From the NCBI RefSeq assembly GCF_000009045.1, contig NC_000964.3, positions 496,001 through 560,000 of the forward strand: 64,000 bases of DNA, written 5' to 3'. The notes beneath the pieces are model-generated. The model made no database searches, was not told where the DNA came from, and worked only from the letters and a program-made list of their open reading frames with translations. How positions within the stretch are numbered: the stretch's first letter is position 1; each line of letters starts with the position of its first letter. Both the position numbers and the translations under genes were made by a program. This stretch comes from Bacillus subtilis subsp. subtilis str. 168. GTDB taxonomy: Bacteria > Bacillota > Bacilli > Bacillales > Bacillaceae. This document shows positions 33,336 to 62,407 of the stretch, piece after piece.

Positions 33336-33421
<86 letters not shown>

Positions 33422-33425
33422 AATG

Positions 33426-33459
33426 ATACCAAGGGTTTTGACACCCTTGGTATTTTTTT
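33426..33459. terminator. Terminator after tRNA-Leu2 (ICE left end)
   Basis: ATACCAAGGG-loop-CCCTTGGTAT followed by a T run. Confidence 0.8.
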
Positions 33460-33504
33460 GTGTTTATTTTCAAATGATTTACTGCCCACAAACTGCCCAC
33501 TTAC

Positions 33505-34611
33505 CTAAAGTAAGTCATCTAATTTATCAGCCATTTCCTTTTGCTTGTTTGGATATAGGTGTCCATAAACATCAATTGTTGTTTTTACAGAACCATGTCC
33601 TAAACGCTCTTTAATTGTTATGTAATCTTCTCCTTGGTGTATTAATAGTGCAACGTGTGAATGTCTAAAATCATGTAAACGTATAGGAGTAAGATCGCTA
33701 TCCTTGCAAAAGTATTTAATTTTCCGACTGAAAATATCTTTTCTTGAAGGTGTATCTTTATATTGAAAGATATAGGTATCATGTGAATGTCTAATACCTA
33801 ATTCATTAAACAACTCTTCTTGTGCTTCTTTCCAACGTTCTAGTAGCTTAAGCAATTTTTTATTGATGCTAACTCGCCGAATCGAATTTTTAGTTTTTGG
33901 AGTAGTAACAACAAATTGACCATCAAGCCAGGTGCACGATTTATGCACATCTATTTCTAATAAGATTTTGTCAATATCTTTCCATTGCAGGGCGAGCATT
34001 TCACCACATCTTAGTCCAGTTAAAAAAGCAACAGTGTAAAAGGTTTTAAACAATAATTGATCTTGAGGAATTAAACTAATAAATTTTTTGAATTCTTCTG
34101 GTCTCCAAAACTTCATTTTCTTTCTTGTTAAAGGTAATCGTTTAACGTTGTCACACGGATTTCTTTTTAAGATTTCTTCATGTACAGCTGTATCAAAAAT
34201 TTTGCTTAGACTAGTCATTATATTATTAACCGATTTATTGCTTAGACCTGTTTCCATTAAATGTTTTCTGAAATCAGTTATTTCTCTATGTGTGATTTTT
34301 TGTATATCAGATTTCAAAAAGTAATCAGATATATGTTTGTTTATAATGTACTTCTGATTCTGATAATAGTTTGGTTTACTATCTATTTCACAACTTGCTA
34401 AATAAATTGAAATTAGAGTCGGAAAGCTTACTGATCTGGACTTTCTTGCTCTTTCTTCTTGAAATTCTCTTCTTAATTTTGCTTCTAATTCTAAAGCCTC
34501 TTTTCTGGTTGATGCTACTGGTCTCGTCCTAATTCTTTCTCCAGTAATCGGGTCAAATCCAAAGCTAACGTCAACTTGATATTGACCATTTTCAAGTTTT
34601 TTTACAGACAT
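33505..34611 (-). CDS. int: Tyrosine recombinase integrase
   Basis: TGLRCGE, HDFRHS, LGH and VYGH catalytic motifs; corresponds to ydcL. Confidence 0.97.
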   Translation of the reverse strand: MSVKKLENGQYQVDVSFGFDPITGERIRTRPVASTRKEALELEAKLRREFQEERARKSRSVSFPTLISIYLASCEIDSKPNYYQNQKYIINKHISDYFLKSDIQKITHREITDFRKHLMETGLSNKSVNNIMTSLSKIFDTAVHEEILKRNPCDNVKRLPLTRKKMKFWRPEEFKKFISLIPQDQLLFKTFYTVAFLTGLRCGEMLALQWKDIDKILLEIDVHKSCTWLDGQFVVTTPKTKNSIRRVSINKKLLKLLERWKEAQEELFNELGIRHSHDTYIFQYKDTPSRKDIFSRKIKYFCKDSDLTPIRLHDFRHSHVALLIHQGEDYITIKERLGHGSVKTTIDVYGHLYPNKQKEMADKLDDLL

Positions 34612-35133: not shown

Positions 35134-35513
35134 TCTTTCTTCTTTAATTCGTCAATGAATTTAATTCCGTTTTTTAATGCTTTTTTAACAAGGCGTGCAG
35201 TTTCCTCATCAAATTCACCATCATTCATAAAAAGGAGTGTATCTTCATCCTTTAATTCCTGTATGGCTTCATTAATTGTTTTATTGAGTAAATCAGTTTC
35301 GTTTTTCTTGCTTACTTCATCCTTTCCTAATAAATAGTCTGTAGATACGTTATATAAGTTGCTCAATTTTAAGAGTGTGTCTGTATCAGGATCTCTGTAA
35401 TCTCTTTCGTAATTAGACAAGTTATTGTTACCGATATTAAGTTTCTCTGCGGCTTCTTTCTGAGTGTACCCAGCTTTTTGTCGAGCTTCTTTTAATCGTT
35501 TGCCTAGGCTCAT
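35130..35513 (-). CDS. immR: ImmR XRE-family repressor
   Basis: LGKRLKEAR...TQKEAAEKL...LSNYE HTH. Confidence 0.95.
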   Translation of the reverse strand: MSLGKRLKEARQKAGYTQKEAAEKLNIGNNNLSNYERDYRDPDTDTLLKLSNLYNVSTDYLLGKDEVSKKNETDLLNKTINEAIQELKDEDTLLFMNDGEFDEETARLVKKALKNGIKFIDELKKKE

Positions 35514-40686: not shown

Positions 40687-40995
40687 GTGTCTGCTGTAGA
40701 TAAACGATTCAAAAGCTTAGGTTTTAATGTGGGCATTCCCTCTTTAGTTTTTGTGAGAAGTTTAAGCAGAGATTGCATGTTGGTTGTTGAAGGAGAACGA
40801 GTAAAAGGATTTGCTGAGTATCGTTACACATTCTATAAAACAAGATACTTGCCAGACGGTCGAATGACTAGCTTAAAAGTTTATATGGAGAATCAAAGCA
40901 TAAAAAGGGTGTTACATCGTGTAGCATCCTTTTTATCTTTCTTGGAAAGAACGAAACAAATTGAACAGAAGGAGTGTGAAAAAGTTGCTCAATAA
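40687..40995 (+). CDS. yddA: RecA/SOS modulator RamA
   Basis: 102-aa ORF between ydcT and conB. The functional name is from literature recall. Confidence 0.8.
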   Translation: MSAVDKRFKSLGFNVGIPSLVFVRSLSRDCMLVVEGERVKGFAEYRYTFYKTRYLPDGRMTSLKVYMENQSIKRVLHRVASFLSFLERTKQIEQKECEKVAQ

Positions 40996-51305: not shown

Positions 51306-52481
51306 TTGCGGGGTGTTTTCTTAGATAAAGATAAAATTCCGTACGACTTAGTCACGAAAAAGTTAAATGAATGGTATACATCAATAAAAAATGATCAAGT
51401 TGAGCAAGCCGAGATTATAAAAACAGAAGTAGAGAAAGAATTGTTAAACATGGAAGAAAATCAAGATGCCCTGTTATATTATCAACTATTAGAATTTAGA
51501 CATGAGATAATGCTGAGTTATATGAAATCTAAGGAAATAGAAGATCTCAATAATGCTTATGAGACTATAAAAGAAATTGAGAAGCAAGGGCAATTAACTG
51601 GCATGTTGGAATACTATTTTTACTTTTTTAAGGGTATGTACGAGTTTAGGCGTAAAGAATTAATTTCAGCGATAAGTGCTTATCGAATAGCTGAATCAAA
51701 GTTGTCAGAAGTTGAGGATGAAATAGAGAAAGCAGAGTTTTTTTTCAAAGTGTCCTATGTATATTATTATATGAAACAAACATACTTCTCCATGAATTAT
51801 GCAAATCGTGCACTCAAAATATTTAGAGAGTATGAAGAATATGCTGTCCAGACTGTGCGTTGTCAATTTATTGTAGCAGGAAACTTGATCGATTCATTGG
51901 AATATGAAAGAGCCTTGGAACAATTTTTGAAGTCTTTGGAAATTTCCAAGGAAAGTAACATAGAGCATTTAATTGCAATGTCACATATGAATATTGGGAT
52001 TTGTTATGATGAATTGAAAGAATATAAGAAGGCTTCACAACATTTAATTTTAGCGTTAGAAATTTTTGAAAAATCAAAACATAGTTTCTTAACAAAGACT
52101 TTATTCACTCTAACCTATGTAGAAGCAAAACAACAAAATTATAATGTTGCTTTGATATACTTTAGGAAAGGGCGATTTATTGCCGATAAAAGTGATGATA
52201 AGGAATACTCAGCGAAATTCAAAATATTAGAGGGATTATTTTTTTCTGATGGTGAGACTCAATTAATAAAGAATGCATTTTCATATCTGGCTTCGAGAAA
52301 AATGTTTGCTGATGTTGAAAATTTTTCGATTGAAGTCGCTGATTATTTTCATGAACAAGGAAATTTAATGCTCTCTAATGAATATTATCGTATGAGTATT
52401 GAAGCAAGACGAAAAATTAAAAAAGGGGAGATTATTGATGAAAATCAGCCGGATTCTATTGGCAGCAGTGATTTTAAGTAG
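51306..52481 (+). CDS. rapI: Rap family TPR regulator RapI
   Basis: KLNEWY...QDALLYYQLLEFRH Rap N-terminus plus TPR repeats. Confidence 0.95.
   Translation: MRGVFLDKDKIPYDLVTKKLNEWYTSIKNDQVEQAEIIKTEVEKELLNMEENQDALLYYQLLEFRHEIMLSYMKSKEIEDLNNAYETIKEIEKQGQLTGMLEYYFYFFKGMYEFRRKELISAISAYRIAESKLSEVEDEIEKAEFFFKVSYVYYYMKQTYFSMNYANRALKIFREYEEYAVQTVRCQFIVAGNLIDSLEYERALEQFLKSLEISKESNIEHLIAMSHMNIGICYDELKEYKKASQHLILALEIFEKSKHSFLTKTLFTLTYVEAKQQNYNVALIYFRKGRFIADKSDDKEYSAKFKILEGLFFSDGETQLIKNAFSYLASRKMFADVENFSIEVADYFHEQGNLMLSNEYYRMSIEARRKIKKGEIIDENQPDSIGSSDFK
52358..52383 (+). promoter_or_regulatory. Probable sigmaH promoter for phrI inside rapI
   Basis: AGGA-N18-GAAT, the usual arrangement for phr genes. 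Confidence 0.7.
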
Positions 52482-53872: not shown

Positions 53873-53932
53873 CTAGGTTGAGGGCCTAGTGGGTGAATAA
53901 CCCGTGGAGGTTCAAGTCCTCTCGGCCGCATC
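53873..53932 (+). repeat. attR 60-bp direct repeat (3' fragment of tRNA-Leu2)
   Basis: Identical to 33362-33421. Confidence 0.96.
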
Positions 53933-53934
53933 TC

Positions 53935-53975
53935 AATAATACCAAGGGTTTAACCACCTTTGGTATTATTTTTTT
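53935..53975. terminator. Diverged copy of the attL terminator
   Basis: AATAATACCAAGGG-loop-CCTTTGGTATTATT followed by a T run. Confidence 0.7.
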
Positions 53976-54029
53976 GTGTGGAAAATACGGCTATGGGAGA
54001 AGACTTGCTCACCAAAACTCACCAGTTAC

Positions 54030-54126
54030 TTAAAGTAAGTCATCCAAACGGTCGGCGGTTCCTTCTGTTTATTAGGAAAAAGATATCCGTTCATTGTAAA
54101 AGAAACGAACCATGTCCTATTCGTTC
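54030..54126 (-). pseudogene. Integrase 3'-end remnant
   Basis: Frameshifted pieces ERIGHGS / GYLFPNKQKE / ADRLDDLL* match the Int C-terminus ERLGHGS / GHLYPNKQKE / ADKLDDLL*. Confidence 0.88.
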
Positions 54127-54135
54127 AAAAAAACT

Positions 54136-54179
54136 AAAGGGTGATACATATTATACATGATTAATATGTATCACCCTTT
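54136..54179. terminator. Perfect 18-bp inverted repeat, probable yddN terminator
   Basis: AAAGGGTGATACATATTA-N8-TAATATGTATCACCCTTT. Confidence 0.6.
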
Positions 54180-54239
54180 TCTTTCTTGTTCAACAATCGC
54201 GCTTGAGGAGAACATAAGCTAATACAACTGACTCGATTT

Positions 54240-55259
54240 CTAAAGTTGCTCCATTCTTTTTTTAAACAACTCATCCACAACCTGTTTTAAAATCTCGTAC
54301 GACTGAATTTCCTTGCTCAATTCGTAAATATTAGATAACACAATTAATTCATCTGCGTGATACATTTGTTGGAAATCAATTAGTTCGCGACGAATTGTTT
54401 CTCGATCACCCATGATTGTATACCCCAGTCGACTGTGGAGAATTTCTAATTCAAACTGTGATAACGATTCTAGGAAGTTTTCAGTGGGTGGAATAAGCTT
54501 ACTTAAATTATTTGTATAAATATCAATATACACCTGCAAATGACTTGCAGAAATAAAAGATGCCTCGTCTATAGATTCTGCTGCAATCACATTAATGCAA
54601 GCGATCACATAAGGTTCTTGTAAATAAGAAGACGGTTGGAAATTTTCTCGATAAATAGAGAGCGCTTCTTCCATCGAATGGGGTGAAAATTGAGCGCCAA
54701 ATGCATAGGGTAAACCAAGCTTTGCAGCAATTTCCGCTGAATCCGTTGAGGATCCTAACACAAAAACAGGCACATGCGTTCCAATACCCGGATAAGCGCG
54801 AACCTCACCCTGTACACTCTTATCCCCGACAAAACGCAAAATATCATTTACTTCTCTTTCAAAGAAAAACACTCCATTATGGTTGGAACGACGAATCACA
54901 TCGGCCGTTTTTTGATCCGTTCCGGGTGCGCGTCCTAATGCCAAATCTACACGATTTGGATATAATGTTTCAAGTGTTCCAAATTGCTCCGCTACGATTA
55001 ATGGGGAATGATTTGGCAACATAATACCCCCTGAACCTACGCGAATGTCTTTTGTATTTGCTAATATATGTTGTACAATTGATACGGTTGCTGCACTTGC
55101 ATAAGCGTCGTGATTATGATGCTCTGCAAACCAAATCCGTTTATAGCCCATATTATCTACAGCTTTAGCTAATGACACTGCAGAATCAATCCCTTGTTTC
55201 ATTGTTTCTCCTTGTCTTAATGGAGCAACTGATAAAACAGATATATCAAATTTTTTCAT
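54240..55259 (-). CDS. yddN: Luciferase-like (LLM) flavin-dependent oxidoreductase
   Basis: WFAEHHN, RVGSGGIML and RVDLALGRAPG motifs. Confidence 0.9.
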   Translation of the reverse strand: MKKFDISVLSVAPLRQGETMKQGIDSAVSLAKAVDNMGYKRIWFAEHHNHDAYASAATVSIVQHILANTKDIRVGSGGIMLPNHSPLIVAEQFGTLETLYPNRVDLALGRAPGTDQKTADVIRRSNHNGVFFFEREVNDILRFVGDKSVQGEVRAYPGIGTHVPVFVLGSSTDSAEIAAKLGLPYAFGAQFSPHSMEEALSIYRENFQPSSYLQEPYVIACINVIAAESIDEASFISASHLQVYIDIYTNNLSKLIPPTENFLESLSQFELEILHSRLGYTIMGDRETIRRELIDFQQMYHADELIVLSNIYELSKEIQSYEILKQVVDELFKKRMEQL

Positions 55260-55518
55260 AATTTCACCTCTAAAATAATGAACTTATACAAGATCAATGG
55301 AAAAAACATTTTGAAAAATTGTTTCATATTAAATGGTGTCCATTCCTCTTTGATTTGCATGCAAATAAATATATACTTTCTCAAACGATCAATACATAGG
55401 CAAAATAAAGTTATTTCACAATTTCACTTTACTTTTAAAGTTTTAAGCAAACATAAAAAAATGTTCAGTGAACAAAATATGTAAAATACATCTTATTTTT
55501 CAGAAAGGATACAAGAAA

Positions 55519-55929
55519 ATGATTGATGAAATAGATAAAAAAATACTTGATGAGCTGTCTAAAAATAGTCGCCTTACAATGAAAAAATTAGGGGAAAAAG
55601 TACATCTCACTGCACCAGCAACCGCATCAAGAGTAGTAAAGTTAATAGACAATGGCATAATAAAAGGATGTAGTATCGAAGTGAATCAAGTGAAATTAGG
55701 CTTCTCTATACATGCTTTTCTTAATATTTATATCGAAAAAATCCATCATCAACCCTATTTAGCTTTTATAGAAACACAAGATAACTATGTAATAAACAAT
55801 TATAAAGTTAGTGGAGACGGTTGCTATTTGCTTGAATGTAAATTTCCTTCAAACGAGGTATTAGATCAATTTTTAAATGACTTAAATAAACATGCAAACT
55901 ATAAAGTGTCGATTGTTATTGGTAAATAG
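55519..55929 (+). CDS. lrpA: Lrp/AsnC family regulator
   Basis: IDEIDKKILDEL...LGEKVHLTAPA HTH and VSGDGCY. Confidence 0.9.
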   Translation: MIDEIDKKILDELSKNSRLTMKKLGEKVHLTAPATASRVVKLIDNGIIKGCSIEVNQVKLGFSIHAFLNIYIEKIHHQPYLAFIETQDNYVINNYKVSGDGCYLLECKFPSNEVLDQFLNDLNKHANYKVSIVIGK

Positions 55930-56051
55930 TTAACTTTATAAAACGGAGATGTGCGGTCATATAACATGATATATATGCTCTAAAAAAGCCCTAGGTTGGA
56001 TATGGAATTTACCAAGCTGGGGCCTTTTTATACATTATAATAACAAGCGCA

Positions 56052-56501
56052 TTATTCATCAGACATTAATGAAGTATTATAATGCTTTTTTACTTCCTTA
56101 ATAGACAAATAAAGCTGATAGTTTCCATACTTCAATAAATCATTCAGAAGGTGATTTAAAACTTCTTGTGAATGAACCGTTACCTTCAGAAGATAACATG
56201 CATCTCCCGAAACACGATGAGCTTCGCTAATTTCATTACGAGTAGCAATAAATTTCAATAAATCATCATGCATATATGCATTCATGAAAAAGAAGACAAA
56301 GGCTGTAAAAGAAAACCCCATCTTCAATTCATCAACCACAATCGAATATGCTTTAATGATACCGTTATCCTCCATTTTTTTGATGCGATTGCCTACCGCT
56401 TGTCCTGTCATATGAATTTTTTCACCGATTTCTTTCCATTGTATCCGAGCATTTTTATTTAATAATTGGAGAATTTGAAAATCAATTGAATCAATTTGCA
56501 T
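56052..56501 (-). CDS. lrpB: Lrp/AsnC family regulator
   Basis: IDSIDFQILQLL...IGEKIHMT and HRVSGDACY. Confidence 0.9.
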   Translation of the reverse strand: MQIDSIDFQILQLLNKNARIQWKEIGEKIHMTGQAVGNRIKKMEDNGIIKAYSIVVDELKMGFSFTAFVFFFMNAYMHDDLLKFIATRNEISEAHRVSGDACYLLKVTVHSQEVLNHLLNDLLKYGNYQLYLSIKEVKKHYNTSLMSDE

Positions 56502-56615
56502 AGTAACTCCTTTCACAGTGAAAAAGTTTTACAAAATAGTATTTCATGAGACCATCGAAAATTCAATGGAAATTATATATCCTTATACAGTATAAAAATT
56601 TTAAGAGGTGAAAAA

Positions 56616-57158
56616 ATGACAACAGCTTTATTAGTGATTGATATTCAAAATGATTACTTTCCAAATGGGAAGATGGCTTTAACAAACCCAGAGAAAGCAG
56701 CACAAAATGCGGCTAAACTACTTTCACACTTTAGAAACACAGGCGCACCTGTCTTTCATGTACAGCATATCACAGAAGGTAACATCGCTCATTTTTTCCA
56801 TCCAAATACAGAAGGTGTCGAAATTCATGAGTCAGTACGTCCATTAGAGAAAGAGACAGTCATTGTAAAACATATGCCGAATAGCTTTTTCAATACAGAT
56901 TTAAATGGAAAGCTACAAGAAGAAGGGGTTAAAGAATTAGTTGTTTGCGGTATGATGTCCCATATGTGTATTGATGCAACAGTTCGTTCTGCAGTTGAAC
57001 ATGGTTATGTATGCCAAGTGGTAGAAGATGCTTGCGCAACAACAACATTGCAAATTGAAGATAAAATCGTTCCTGCTGAGCATGTCCATTACGCATTTAT
57101 GGCCGCATTAAATGGTGTCTATGCAACAGTAAAAACCACAGAGGCATTTTTAAAATAA
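56616..57158 (+). CDS. yddQ: Isochorismatase-family cysteine hydrolase
   Basis: LLVIDIQNDYF, KHMPNSF and GMMSHMCI motifs. Confidence 0.9.
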   Translation: MTTALLVIDIQNDYFPNGKMALTNPEKAAQNAAKLLSHFRNTGAPVFHVQHITEGNIAHFFHPNTEGVEIHESVRPLEKETVIVKHMPNSFFNTDLNGKLQEEGVKELVVCGMMSHMCIDATVRSAVEHGYVCQVVEDACATTTLQIEDKIVPAEHVHYAFMAALNGVYATVKTTEAFLK

Positions 57159-57368
57159 AAGAATTTCCTGCGCGAACATAACGTCTTTCTTTTCACAAGA
57201 AAGATGATTCAACAACTTAAAAAAGGATGTTCAGAAAAATACTTCTGGACATCCTTTATTCATTATCTTTTATTGTTTTTCAGTATCATTATTCCCATCT
57301 GATAAAAGATCAAGATGTCCTGTTTTTGATCCATAGTAAGACCATATACAGGGATTGTTTTTGCCATA

Positions 57369-57579
57369 AATATAGATATTGATGAAGGTTTACATAAAGC
57401 ACCTAATTGCTTGATTTACTTTAATGTTAGATCCCTCAATAACTCCATTCTCTTCTAATTTCTCTACTCTAGCTGTAGCTGCTGGGCATGTTAAATGTAC
57501 TCTCTCCCAGATCTTTCATTGAATTCGGCTATTATACATAATTTCTCTATAATTTTTTATCTGTTTGATCTATTTGAAC
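57369..57579 (-). pseudogene. Decayed Lrp/AsnC regulator gene
   Basis: QIDQTDKK / MKDLGERVHLTCPAATARVEKLEENGVIEGSNIKVNQ / TFINIYI segments with frameshifts, a stop and no start codon. Confidence 0.85.
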
Positions 57580-57710
57580 GTTAATTCCTTTCGAAAATAA
57601 AGTCAAAGAGTTAAAACACTTTTTTTTATCTATGTATTCGAACACTGCTGATATTATACACTTAACTCTGTCGATCTAAGACAAATAAAAAAAGAAAGTG
57701 AGTTGTAAAT

Positions 57711-58475
57711 ATGAATATTACACAAATTCGAAATGCAACAATTGTTGTAAAATACGCAAATAAAAAATTTTTGATAGATCCTATGTTAGCAGAGAAAGGT
57801 ACGTACGCTACTTTCCCTGAAACGATCAGACAAGATTTATTTAATCCTTTGGTGAGTTTGCCAACATCAATTGATAACATTCTGGATGGCGTAGATGCGG
57901 TAATTGTTACTCATCTACACCTAGATCACTTTGATGATGTGGCAAAAAACGTATTGCCAAAAAACATCAAAATGTTTGTTCAAAATGAAGCAGATGCAAA
58001 AGAAGTAAAAGCAAGTGGTTTCAAAAATGTAGAAGTGCTACATCAAGACACTGTTTTTGAAGGGATCCAATTAGTAAAAACAAAAGGTGAACATGGCAGA
58101 GGGGAAGAGTTATTAAACTTAATGGGTGATGTTTGTGGATTAGTATTCAAGCACCCAAGTGAAAAAGTTTTATATGTAGCTGGGGATACAGTTTGGTATG
58201 ATGCTATCGAAGACGAGATTCATACACATCAACCAGAAATCATTGTGGTTAATGGTGGAGACAATCAAAGATTAGATTTAGGTTCACTCATCATGGGAAA
58301 AGAAGACATCTATGAAGTTCACAAGGCTGCTCCTCATGCTAAGATTATATCTGTTCATATGGAAGCTGTTAACCATTGGACACTATCTAGAGAAGAATTA
58401 AAAAACTTTAGTAAAGAAAAAGGATTCTCAAGTAATATTTTAGTGCCAGAAGATGGCGAGTCTTACACATTTTAA
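57711..58475 (+). CDS. yddR: Metallo-beta-lactamase fold hydrolase
   Basis: THLHLDH, GEH, AGDT and HMEAVNH motifs. Confidence 0.9.
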   Translation: MNITQIRNATIVVKYANKKFLIDPMLAEKGTYATFPETIRQDLFNPLVSLPTSIDNILDGVDAVIVTHLHLDHFDDVAKNVLPKNIKMFVQNEADAKEVKASGFKNVEVLHQDTVFEGIQLVKTKGEHGRGEELLNLMGDVCGLVFKHPSEKVLYVAGDTVWYDAIEDEIHTHQPEIIVVNGGDNQRLDLGSLIMGKEDIYEVHKAAPHAKIISVHMEAVNHWTLSREELKNFSKEKGFSSNILVPEDGESYTF

Positions 58476-58668
58476 TATGAACACCGACAAATAAATAGAA
58501 GAAGCTCATAATTATAAAAACTAATCATGAGCTTCTTCTAATAATGAATATTTTAAATTTTAAATATATCGAAAATCCTAAATATACGGAATAACAAAAA
58601 TGGAATGTTCCAATGATGACAAAAAAACTTGAAAAGCAACAAAGATGTGTCGTTAGGAGGTAGAATTC

Positions 58669-59979
58669 ATGGTAATGACAAAAAAAGATACAAATATATC
58701 AACACAGCAGCCTCTTTGGTTACAAGGTTATATTGATTCACCAGAAAAACAAAACCAACTTTATAAAAAAACATTAAAAATCTTGATTTTTTCACAAATA
58801 TTTGGGGGAGCAGGACTTGGAGCTGGGATAACAGTTGGGGCGCTTCTTGCACAAGATATGATAGGATCGGAAAATGTAGCAGGAATTCCAACTGCCCTCT
58901 TTACTTTTGGATCTGCCGTAGCTGCCCTGCTTATAGGAGCATCCTCACAACGTTTTGGTCGCAGAGCTGGACTTGCAGGTGGTTTCCTTATAGGCGGATT
59001 AGGTGCTATAGGTGTGATAATCGCGGCTTTAATTAACAGCGTTGCCCTATTATTTGTTTCTCTTCTTATTTATGGAGCAGGTATGGCTTCTAATCTTCAA
59101 GTTCGGTATGCTGGGACAGACCTTGCAAATGAGAAACAACGGGCAACTGCTGCAAGTATGGCCTTAGTTTCTACTACTTTAGGAGCTGTAGTAGGTCCTA
59201 ACTTAGTTAATACAATGGGGGAATTTGCAGATTCAATTGGTGTTCCCAATTTAGCTGGTCCGTTTATTATGTCAGGAGCAGCTTTTATAATTGCTGGAAT
59301 TATTCTCTTAATTTTTCTTCGTCCAGATCCGCTGTTTGTATCAACAGCTATTGCGAATGCTGAGAAAAAAGACGATAAAGTACAAATAGGAGGAAGTCTA
59401 AAAAATCCTGCTATAGACAAAAAAGGAATAATGGTAGGAGCTGTCATTATGATTTTAGCTCAACTAATCATGACAGCTATTATGACAATGACACCGGTTC
59501 ACATGGGTCATCACGGTCATGGTTTAAGCGAAGTGGGATTAGTTATAGGACTCCATATTGCAGCGATGTATCTTCCTTCACCATTGACTGGTTTATTAGT
59601 AGATAAGTTTGGTCGCACAACTATGGCTATTGCTTCAGGTGCCACACTTCTTGCCGCTGGGTTGGTGGCAGCTATTGCACCGGCAGACTCATTATCATTG
59701 CTAATCCTAGCACTAGTATTACTAGGGGTAGGTTGGAACTTTGGTTTACTAACGGGAACTGCCCTTATTATAGATTCAACACATCCATCTCTACGTGCAA
59801 AAACACAGGGAACATTCGATGTTTTATTAGCACTATCAGGAGCAGCAGGTGGAGCCTTGTCAGGAATGGTTGTTGCACATTCTAGTTATACAATACTATC
59901 AATTTCTGGAGCCGTTTTATCATTGTTACTCATTCCAGTAGTTATTTGGTATTTTAGAAGGATTCAGGAAAAAGCATAA
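58669..59979 (+). CDS. yddS: MFS transporter
   Basis: About 12 TM segments; SQRFGRR and LVDKFGR loop motifs. Confidence 0.9.
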   Translation: MVMTKKDTNISTQQPLWLQGYIDSPEKQNQLYKKTLKILIFSQIFGGAGLGAGITVGALLAQDMIGSENVAGIPTALFTFGSAVAALLIGASSQRFGRRAGLAGGFLIGGLGAIGVIIAALINSVALLFVSLLIYGAGMASNLQVRYAGTDLANEKQRATAASMALVSTTLGAVVGPNLVNTMGEFADSIGVPNLAGPFIMSGAAFIIAGIILLIFLRPDPLFVSTAIANAEKKDDKVQIGGSLKNPAIDKKGIMVGAVIMILAQLIMTAIMTMTPVHMGHHGHGLSEVGLVIGLHIAAMYLPSPLTGLLVDKFGRTTMAIASGATLLAAGLVAAIAPADSLSLLILALVLLGVGWNFGLLTGTALIIDSTHPSLRAKTQGTFDVLLALSGAAGGALSGMVVAHSSYTILSISGAVLSLLLIPVVIWYFRRIQEKA

Positions 59980-60561
59980 GCTTATATAACTGTCTTTGAA
60001 GAACCTAAGTAGACATTACTTTACCGGAACCTCCTTTTTCTATTTATTATAGTAAGGAGTTGACATGGCATTAGTGGCATGTGTATAACTACACAATTAT
60101 TTGGGATTCAGAGAGCATGTAATGAACGGAAGAGATAATTATTTATCACTTTTATTATTGTACGGTGTTCTTGTGGCATTAAGTTCAGTCAATTTTGGTC
60201 TAACTGTTTTCTTTTTGTTTTCATCACCTCTCCATATTATTAACAAACACGAAAAGGATTTTAATGAAAATAAAATGATTAGCGTATGTATCTCTAATTT
60301 TCAAAATGAATGAATAGTCCTTTTTAAGATTTACACACTTATTCTCCAAGGAAAAATGACTCAATTTTTCGATTTTTTATGTAAATCAAAAAAGAATCAT
60401 GTTAGAGTAGGTGTGCTGAAAATAATTCAAAAAATTATTTTGCGATATGATTAAAGTAATATTGCCAGAGAGTTTCAATTGGACAAAATTGTAAGTGTTT
60501 AATACACTGGGGCTGCAATCAAATATGCACCTGGAATCAATTGCTAAACGGGGGAGTTTAT

Positions 60562-60738
60562 ATGAACAACAAGAAAAATATCTTTGATATTGTTATGTAC
60601 ATTATTTTCGGTGTGTTAAGTCTTTTTCTAGTTGCAAAAACTGATTATGGCACTGGAGTTTTAGTGTTTGTTGCAATTTTATACCTCGCTGTTATTGCTT
60701 ATAAAATTAAGCAAGTATTTAGTAATTCAGATTCTTAA
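60562..60738 (+). CDS. ydzM: Small two-TM membrane protein (58 aa)
   Basis: ATG after a GGGGGAG RBS; directly upstream of yddT. Confidence 0.75.
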   Translation: MNNKKNIFDIVMYIIFGVLSLFLVAKTDYGTGVLVFVAILYLAVIAYKIKQVFSNSDS

Positions 60739-60762
60739 GGTGTAACACAAGGAGGATTTCAA

Positions 60763-61449
60763 TTGAGAAAGAAAAGAGTTATTACTTGTGTTATGGCTGC
60801 ATCATTGACTTTAGGCTCACTTTTACCTGCAGGTTACGCTTCTGCAAAGGAGGACTCTAAGACAACCCCTTCTTACGAAGAACTAGCTCTACATTACAAA
60901 ATGAAAAGTGAAAAGATTTCATCGAACGGGAAATTAGTTGAAATTGAGTATGTGAGTGGAAATGAAACTCACAAAGTTCAGATGAACGGAAATAATCATA
61001 CTGTAAAAGTCGATGGCATAGAACAAAAAGGTTTAAACTTTGAGTATGATGAAAATGTTGCTAAAAGAACAAATTATGAAAACAATAATTTGAAATCAAA
61101 TGAATTCACAACACAGGCTGCAAAACCTAAAAAGGGATACCATTATGTGGGGACTTTATCTGGGCATACAAAAGCAGCTAAAAATGCGTTATCAGTTACA
61201 ATGTCATTAGTCGGTATTGTCCCTGGCTTGGGATGGGGGAGTAAGGCTGCCACTATTTTATTCTCTTATTGGGCAAAAGAACAAATCCCTGATGCGTATT
61301 ATAAATATGATTTATACGAAAAAGGAGCAATGACTGATAGTTGGTATCAGTATGCTACAGTTCAATTTTTTGAAGATAAAGCTCATAAAAAGAAAATGGG
61401 CAAACCTTGGACAAGTACTCCTGCAAAAGTAGATTTACCTAATAGCTAA
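60763..61449 (+). CDS. yddT: Secreted protein of unknown function
   Basis: Sec signal peptide ending AGYASA; TTG start after AGGAGG. Confidence 0.82.
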   Translation: MRKKRVITCVMAASLTLGSLLPAGYASAKEDSKTTPSYEELALHYKMKSEKISSNGKLVEIEYVSGNETHKVQMNGNNHTVKVDGIEQKGLNFEYDENVAKRTNYENNNLKSNEFTTQAAKPKKGYHYVGTLSGHTKAAKNALSVTMSLVGIVPGLGWGSKAATILFSYWAKEQIPDAYYKYDLYEKGAMTDSWYQYATVQFFEDKAHKKKMGKPWTSTPAKVDLPNS

Positions 61450-61591
61450 TTTTAAAATCACTTTGTCTTTATAAAGGACAAAGTGATTTTTTGTTATACA
61501 GAAGTAAAATCCCTCGTCTGAGGAATCTTGGAAAAAACTTGGTTCAATTTTGATATAACATGTTTTTTTCTTGCTAATTTAGTTTTTCTAT

Positions 61592-61735
61592 GTATCGCTA
61601 CACATTCTAAATAATAAGATATTAGCCGGACGGTTGATGCCAAGCTCAAAAGTTTATATGGAAGTCAAAGCATAAAAAAGGGTGTTACAACGTGTAGTCT
61701 TCTTTTTATTTTGCCAACGTAACAAGTGTGAAAGT
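61592..61735 (+). pseudogene. Remnant of a yddA (ramA)-like gene
   Basis: About 85% identical by manual alignment to 40818-40924; in-frame stop and indels. Confidence 0.85.
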
Positions 61736-61872
61736 AATGATTTGTAGGATCAGTTAAGAAAGGTTTAAGATTAGATATTGAAAAATTTTATATATTTTCA
61801 ATAAAATACTGGTACTATAATAAATGTATACAGATTGTATGGAGATGTAATTAATTAAAAAGGAGTTTTTAA

Positions 61873-62058
61873 TTGCGTTGGAGTAAATGGTTCAATGTTT
61901 TTTGTATAGTAGCATTGGGATCAATATATGGTTATAAATTATTTACTAACCAAGAAGTCAGTACTACTCGTTTAATAATAGCTTCTGTAATTGTGTTGTG
62001 GAATATTGTTGGACTTTTTAGCAAAGAATCAGTAAAACAAGCACAGCAAGCAAATTAA
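61873..62058 (+). CDS. ydzN: Small two-TM membrane protein (61 aa)
   Basis: TTG start after an AAAGGAG RBS. Confidence 0.7.
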   Translation: MRWSKWFNVFCIVALGSIYGYKLFTNQEVSTTRLIIASVIVLWNIVGLFSKESVKQAQQAN

Positions 62059-62158
62059 AAGTCATAAAGTTGGGAAAGAAGGATGTTACTTATGTAGTAT
62101 CCTTCTTTATTATTCCTTGAAAAATGAAACAAATTGGAGATTACAGCTTATATAATCA

Positions 62159-62231
62159 ATTGAAGTCGTTGATTATTTTCATGAACAGGAGATTTAATGC
62201 TTTCTGATGAAATATTATCGTATGAATGTTG
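62159..62231 (+). pseudogene. Remnant of a rapI 3' segment
   Basis: 66 of 74 aligned columns match 52329-52401 (manual alignment). Confidence 0.88.
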
Positions 62232-62407
62232 CAAGAGGAAACGTTACTCAAAGATTACAGGGATGTGATGAACACTCCTCTTTATCGCACTCACCTGACC
62301 CCAAATTGTTGGGGAAGGGCAGGTACGGAAGATAGAGTATTTTTTCTTCGTAACAAATCGAAAAGGTTGGATAATAAAAAACTTATAATCTAAGGCGGTA
62401 TATAGTT

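Follow-up and report, generated by a model that had tools for sequence, protein, structure and literature searches.

Among Gram-positive bacteria, ICEBs1 of Bacillus subtilis subsp. subtilis str. 168 serves as the main model of an integrative conjugative element (ICE). Its gene yddA has been renamed ramA, for RecA modulator (PMC11841131), and the 17-bp att core CTAGG-N7-CCTAG is used here as defined previously (PMC3715440). CIMEs and decayed ICEs formed by tandem accretion at tRNA genes or other att sites have been described for ICESt1/ICESt3 of Streptococcus thermophilus, and the tandem accretion model is established for ICE families other than that of ICEBs1 (reviewed in PMC5704250). The model comprises site-specific integration of an element, the loss of its integration and transfer genes, and the entry of a second element into the att site of the remnant, which results in a tandem array. 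Cargo genes persist among the stubs of the backbone. A CIME keeps both of its att sites and is mobilisable in cis.

The DNA immediately to the right of ICEBs1 in str. 168 contains a short relic of yddA, which is very probably a scar without function, left by an older member of the ICEBs1 family, a "ghost ICE" once integrated in the 3' end of tRNA-Leu(GAG). The history of this ghost would include the same three steps as that of the decayed elements of S. thermophilus. As in the CIME systems, the integration and transfer genes have been lost and cargo genes persist among backbone stubs. However, whereas a CIME keeps both att sites, only the left site of the ghost, which is now attR of ICEBs1, is intact. 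Because the right att core is gone, the ghost would already be past the CIME stage. The comparison with ramA of ICEBs1 is one of nucleotide homology: the relic corresponds to codons 42–84 and a second piece to the 3' tail of the gene, but the relic has no coding capacity. It is an ordinary genomic fossil and not a new kind of system or mechanism. A literature search, with most subscription journals outside its coverage, found no published description of this ghost ICE. The new point is a modest one: the neighbouring gene ydzN appears to be an ICE survivor, and the ramA hairpin delimits the variable slot that it occupies.

Results and discussion

A decayed fragment of yddA beyond the right end of ICEBs1

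The genome of str. 168 is one contig of 4,215,606 bp. The stretch analysed here, called the window, is 64,000 nucleotides long and comprises bases 496001–560000; positions are given in its numbering unless stated otherwise. It contains a complete ICEBs1-type element bounded by perfect 60-bp direct repeats, with attL and attR being 100% identical:

33362–33421: attL of ICEBs1, overlapping the 3' end of tRNA-Leu(GAG) (33336–33419)
33505–34611, minus strand: int ORF of ICEBs1
40687–40995, plus strand: intact yddA/ramA of the resident ICEBs1, a 102-codon ORF and the reference for all comparisons
51306–52481: rapI ORF of ICEBs1
53873–53932, plus strand: attR of ICEBs1, the 60-bp repeat of attL, which holds the 17-bp core; also the putative former attL of the ghost element

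A sequence-only reading of this DNA had proposed that a decayed copy of yddA is located 7.7 kb outside the ICE. A blastn search with 61400–62000 against the rest of the window confirmed the copy with a single outstanding match. The segment 61584–61712 aligns to 40810–40939 with 108 of 131 positions identical (82%), 3 gaps, and an E value of 6e-28; against the whole genome, the E value is 2e-26. The match starts 7652 nt past attR and lies between the ORFs of yddT (60763–61449) and ydzN (61873–62058). No yddA homology was detected upstream of 61584 when the 40 kb to the right of attR were compared with ICEBs1 by blastn. Two segments are distinguished:

61584–61712, plus strand: relic piece 1, a dead internal fragment of yddA/ramA (129 nt, equivalent to codons 42–84; blastn)
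61713–61745, plus strand: possible decayed continuation of piece 1 (yddA 3' tail), a weak gapped resemblance in a MAFFT alignment that is not significant alone

The segment is AT-rich, with a GC content of 0.33, and two such stretches may resemble each other by chance. The raw score of the match is 79, by contrast, whereas 500 first-order Markov sequences of the same composition score 16.0 on average (sd 1.8, maximum 24), and 500 mononucleotide shuffles of the segment reach at most 21. The match thus has a z-score of about 35 relative to composition-matched random sequences, its significance holds after correction for AT-rich composition, and together with the genome-wide E value this randomisation excludes a chance likeness.

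The earlier manual count of 92 out of 108 columns against 40818–40924 was reproduced by a global alignment with 13 substitutions and 3 indels. The change of YRYTFY to YRYTF followed by a stop is also present, as TAT>TAA at the position matching 40836, and the indels said to follow it are three of 1 nt each, accompanied by two further in-frame stops. One point is to be corrected: the matched stretch is internal, spanning codons 42–84 of 102, and GTGTAG is not the stop of yddA.

Signature of neutral decay in piece 1

Piece 1 differs from the ICE gene by 20 substitutions, which are distributed as 4, 9, and 7 over codon positions 1, 2, and 3, without an excess at third positions; 5 are synonymous and 15 non-synonymous. 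Three in-frame stops interrupt the fragment, three 1-nt indels shift its frame, and both the start and codons 1–41 are missing. It does not provide the complete ORF of about 92–102 codons with a start codon that characterizes yddA. Judged by its sequence, piece 1 is a non-functional pseudogene fragment unable to encode RamA, and the pattern of its changes is the signature expected of neutral decay. No ribosome footprints were found across 61465–61819 in one Ribo-seq run, about 6% of whose reads were used; the same run covers the neighbouring ydzM and yddT. The relic presumably has no function today, as indicated by its sequence together with this part, about 6%, of one Ribo-seq sample. A search of Rfam gave no match on the relic, and sub-threshold matches (E 0.4–0.8) occurred only on the terminator region of yddT. 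On the minus strand, a 51-codon ORF (61494–61649) spans the relic's left half; ribosome footprints on it are absent from the one sample used, and it is probably spurious.

Piece 1 is roughly equidistant (81–83%) from the ICEBs1-clade yddA alleles of six species, whereas these alleles are approximately 90% alike where compared (the allele of str. 168 versus that of the relative G022). The near-equal distances indicate an old copy and not a recent patch. No yddA allele is much closer to the relic: all are 72–83% identical to it among 49 species genomes of the genus and 12 loci from the species collection, which contains one genome per species.

Collinear scars to the right of attR

The 40 kb to the right of attR were compared with ICEBs1 by blastn and tblastx, and the key pieces were searched against the whole genome. 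In addition to piece 1, the following features were found:

53933–54126: putative left end of the ghost, a copy of the post-tRNA terminator hairpin and a stub of the int 3' end (minus strand); matches 33420–33609 (66% over 203 nt, E 1e-13)
62076–62136, plus strand: relic piece 2, a second yddA hairpin and 3' tail; matches 40902–40963 (79% over 63 nt, E 8.6e-6 against the whole genome)
62156–62246, plus strand: stub of the rapI 3' end; matches 52326–52419 (84% over 95 nt, E 9e-18 genome-wide)
64943–65105 (genome 560943–561105), beyond the window: second stub, of a rap end and phr start; matches 52263–52448 (64% over 188 nt)
genome 563495–563571, 570267–570328, and 575627–575704 (within 67495–79704 in window numbering, beyond its end): three degenerate copies of the tRNA-Leu 3' end and terminator

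At least five relics, the int stub, yddA pieces 1 and 2, the rapI stub, and the att scars, are thus collinear with ICEBs1, and genome-wide searches place their sequences at this locus alone. Apart from the short int, yddA, and rapI stubs, no ICE genes were detected in the 40 kb by blastn and tblastx against ICEBs1, and the integrase, nicK, and con genes that a functional ICEBs1-family element carries between its att sites are missing from the ghost. The rapI stub starts 20 nt past piece 2, and the junction 62136–62156 would stand for a deletion of about 11.4 kb reaching from conB to the 5' part of rapI.

The int stub and piece 1 are alike as collinear scars but come from different genes, int and ramA, and are positioned at opposite ends of a cargo block of 7.5 kb. 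This block (54127–61583, yddN to yddT) has no detectable ICE homology, and two or more successive elements could have contributed to the scars. We infer that one element, and not two or more, was behind all the scars, even though two rap stubs are present. The second rap-type stub suggests that the array includes more than one decayed element. The distance from att to yddA is 7448 nt in ICEBs1 and 7711 nt in the ghost; this near-equality is taken as a coincidence, because the intervening DNA is unrelated.

Outside ICEBs1, the genome has yddA sequence at the two relic sites and nowhere else. Sequences of att type number five, none of them more than 46 kb from the tRNA gene, and only two sites in the genome match the 17-bp core with at most three mismatches. 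Five att-type sites within 46 kb are best read as a serial accretion array at one tRNA gene. Because the three distal att scars lack the CTAGG-N7-CCTAG core, they do not fix the right boundary of the ghost. The original genome paper's "prophage-like region 2" at about 529–570 kb presumably corresponds to this array of att scars.

The gene ydzN between two copies of the ramA hairpin

To the right of piece 1 lies a gene that is intact:

61873–62058, plus strand: ydzN, a live gene whose 61-aa product is predicted to be a small membrane protein; putative ramA-conB slot gene of the old element

It is flanked by two copies of one hairpin, at 61675–61712 and 62076–62113. In ramA of ICEBs1, the hairpin (approximately 40899–40935) has a 17-pair stem with A and U tracts and a folding energy of −21.3 kcal/mol (z −8.5 relative to shuffles). 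The upstream copy, ghost hairpin 1 (61675–61712), has decayed to background (−7.8 kcal/mol, z −0.9), whereas the downstream copy, ghost hairpin 2 (62075–62108), is intact (−17.9 kcal/mol, z −4.4). Hairpin 2 begins 17 nt past the stop codon of ydzN, appears terminator-like in a pattern scan, with 15 pairs, and has the features of an intrinsic terminator, namely a GC-containing stem-loop and a U-run directly after a stop codon. It is likely to be the terminator of ydzN.

In Bacillus-type alleles, even those with only 73% protein identity, the hairpin sequence of ramA stays almost unchanged; two Listeria alleles have not retained it. Because the stem hardly varies in the former and is not kept in the latter, covariation is uninformative about selection at the level of RNA. 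The ramA hairpin may be an accident of coding, or it might act as an attenuator of transcription between the DNA-processing genes and the conjugation genes of the ICE. The hairpin region within ramA (40895–40943) is terminator-shaped and located about 50–70 nt before conB.

Pairwise dN/dS values among the ydzN orthologues of the relatives G002, G014, and G005 are 0.12–0.30, which shows purifying selection, and copies of ydzN are broken in three other species. Genes of the ydzN type are present in 10 of 49 genomes of the genus; none turned up in 42 genomes from other genera within the family, and tblastn gave no match in plasmid or phage records. No Pfam family was found for ydzN, yddT, ydzM, or yddA.

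The ramA-conB junction in relatives

The arrangement of the relic is mirrored in G022, a genome of the same genus with a flank identity of 89%, which at species level answers the suggestion to look for strains that have yddA intact in this position. There, an intact yddA of 93 codons is followed within 46 nt by a ydzN-like ORF of 53 codons, which has 43% identity to ydzN (BLASTP, E 5e-15), and then by a second hairpin. These genes belong to a mini-element of 3.8 kb (L026 14456–18367) containing, in order, attL, the nicK 3' end, ydcS, ydcT, yddA, the ydzN-like gene, and, further on, a second att. The att cores have 0 and 2 mismatches, and there is no integrase. The mini-element is a candidate cis-mobilizable element and, with its two cores, is nearer to a true CIME than the ghost is. 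It is trailed by further att copies and ICE fragments.

In G005 (flank identity 93.5%), a 75-nt yddA 3' piece with 92% identity to ICEBs1 immediately precedes the ydzN orthologue within the same island array; the neighbours of the pair are a second copy of cspC and a small ORF, and not yddT. The same genome contains an ICEBs1 that has undergone extensive deletion and lies between two att sites with perfect cores (L013 18469 to L014 2045). Its left end is kept as far as about window position 35496 and there abuts the 3' end of rapI, with phrI and attR behind it. Next come two modules that contain cspC, with att-like scars between them. In G002 and G014, no further ICE protein relics were found near ydzN.

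Three states of the ramA-conB junction have been observed. The two genes overlap directly in str. 168, B. inaquosorum, and B. glycinifermentans; they are separated by a 49-codon ORF unrelated to ydzN in B. spizizenii (L041 3297–3446) and, by matching coordinates, in B. rugosus; and they are accompanied by a ydzN-like gene in G022. Three further ICEBs1-family elements have a ramA-conB spacer of similar length, and spacers of this kind are present at L042–L045. The existence of several states indicates that this short junction region varies within the ICE family. The succession of intact yddA, ydzN-like gene, and second hairpin in G022 shows ydzN as a surviving gene of the old element and not as a chromosomal neighbour. 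From this gene order, ydzN of str. 168 is placed in the ramA-conB slot, as a survivor of that element.

Two earlier proposals can be refined in this light. The relic had been described as squeezed between yddT and ydzN, which is correct as to position; however, ydzN is not an unrelated neighbour but, by the comparison above, itself derived from the old element. The view that the cargo was inserted into, or survived the deletion of, an ICE core region gains from the collinear relics and from the intact yddA beside a ydzN-like gene in the att-flanked element of G022. The cargo, however, is limited to yddN to yddT (54127–61583), which may have been inserted or may be older.

Going further, the ramA hairpin might mark a recombination slot at ramA-conB for small gene cassettes, with ydzN being a mobile mini-cassette that outlived its carrier. 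We consider this idea improbable; the slot has been seen empty, with an ORF of 49 aa, or with ydzN-type genes between duplicate copies of the hairpin.

Alternative origins of the relic

The yddA fragment might instead be a copy of the gene in the resident ICEBs1, brought into the chromosome through illegitimate or ectopic recombination, with no earlier element being involved, as the only other yddA in the genome is that of ICEBs1, 20.8 kb away. Such a copy would have had to diverge by 18% and acquire indels, whereas no difference separates attL from attR of ICEBs1 (100% identity). Furthermore, the relic is no nearer to the resident allele than to those of other species, and in its tail, piece 2 resembles the yddA 3' variant from elements of other species more closely than the resident yddA. 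The equidistance and the tail variant both argue against a recent copy of the resident gene. The relics of int, rapI, and att around the fragment are in the order of an ICE. This origin is therefore extremely improbable.

The decay of an earlier element could also be questioned on the grounds that the yddA stretch was kept for a role in cis on ydzN, either as a terminator or insulator upstream of the gene or as a part of its 5' leader. The likeness to ramA would then be due to selection on a DNA or RNA element rather than to ancestry alone. A yddA 3' piece with a hairpin is indeed located directly upstream of ydzN-type genes in str. 168, G005, and G022, with the hairpin folding strongly in G005 (z −6.5) and G022 (z −4.9), and a variant has been listed in the 'ydzN 5'UTR' (PMC5730154). 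In str. 168, however, the upstream hairpin folds no better than background, the substitutions in the relic look neutral, and no Rfam family matches it. The best sigma-70-like promoter match upstream of ydzN (61778–61807) is downstream of the relic, and an intact ydzN is present without any upstream yddA piece in G002 and G014. A function in cis is thus very unlikely, and the relic is best regarded as a scar of the ghost ICE.

Proposed history of the locus

The scars of the ghost ICE suggest the following course of events, the order of which is our inference. A relative of ICEBs1 would have integrated at the tRNA-Leu gene, with ydzN as a small accessory gene in the variable slot from ramA to conB (yddB) and a copy of the ramA 3' hairpin on either side of it. 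The ghost backbone from int to the 5' part of ramA would then have been lost or replaced by the 7.5 kb of unrelated genes from yddN to yddT, and a deletion that took out all of the conjugation machinery would have brought the tail of ramA up against the rapI 3' end. The leftover ramA would have drifted neutrally, gaining stops and frameshifts, while ydzN and its terminator hairpin stayed under selection. The present-day ICEBs1 would have entered the attL of the ghost later, which is possible since the tRNA end on the left side is complete again after an integration; the ghost would thereby have been shifted 20.5 kb to the right by tandem accretion.

According to this history, the DNA just to the right of ICEBs1 would be the eroded body of an earlier relative, and the locus would provide a natural example of tandem accretion for the ICEBs1 family. 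The same tRNA gene appears to have gathered a series of elements, as at least five att-type sites are spread over 46 kb, and such serial accretion would explain the AT-rich and variable neighbourhood. Short homologies shared by ICEBs1 and its flank could matter for engineering the element or for reading rearrangements.

In the T-run between the Shine-Dalgarno sequence and the TTG start of ydzN, an extra T behind 61865 is present in both of the two Ribo-seq reads and in an RNA-seq contig. It looks like a strain polymorphism or an error in the reference. A 'ydzN (5'UTR)' variant is among the differences between laboratory derivatives of 168 (PMC5730154), and the extra T could be the same change.
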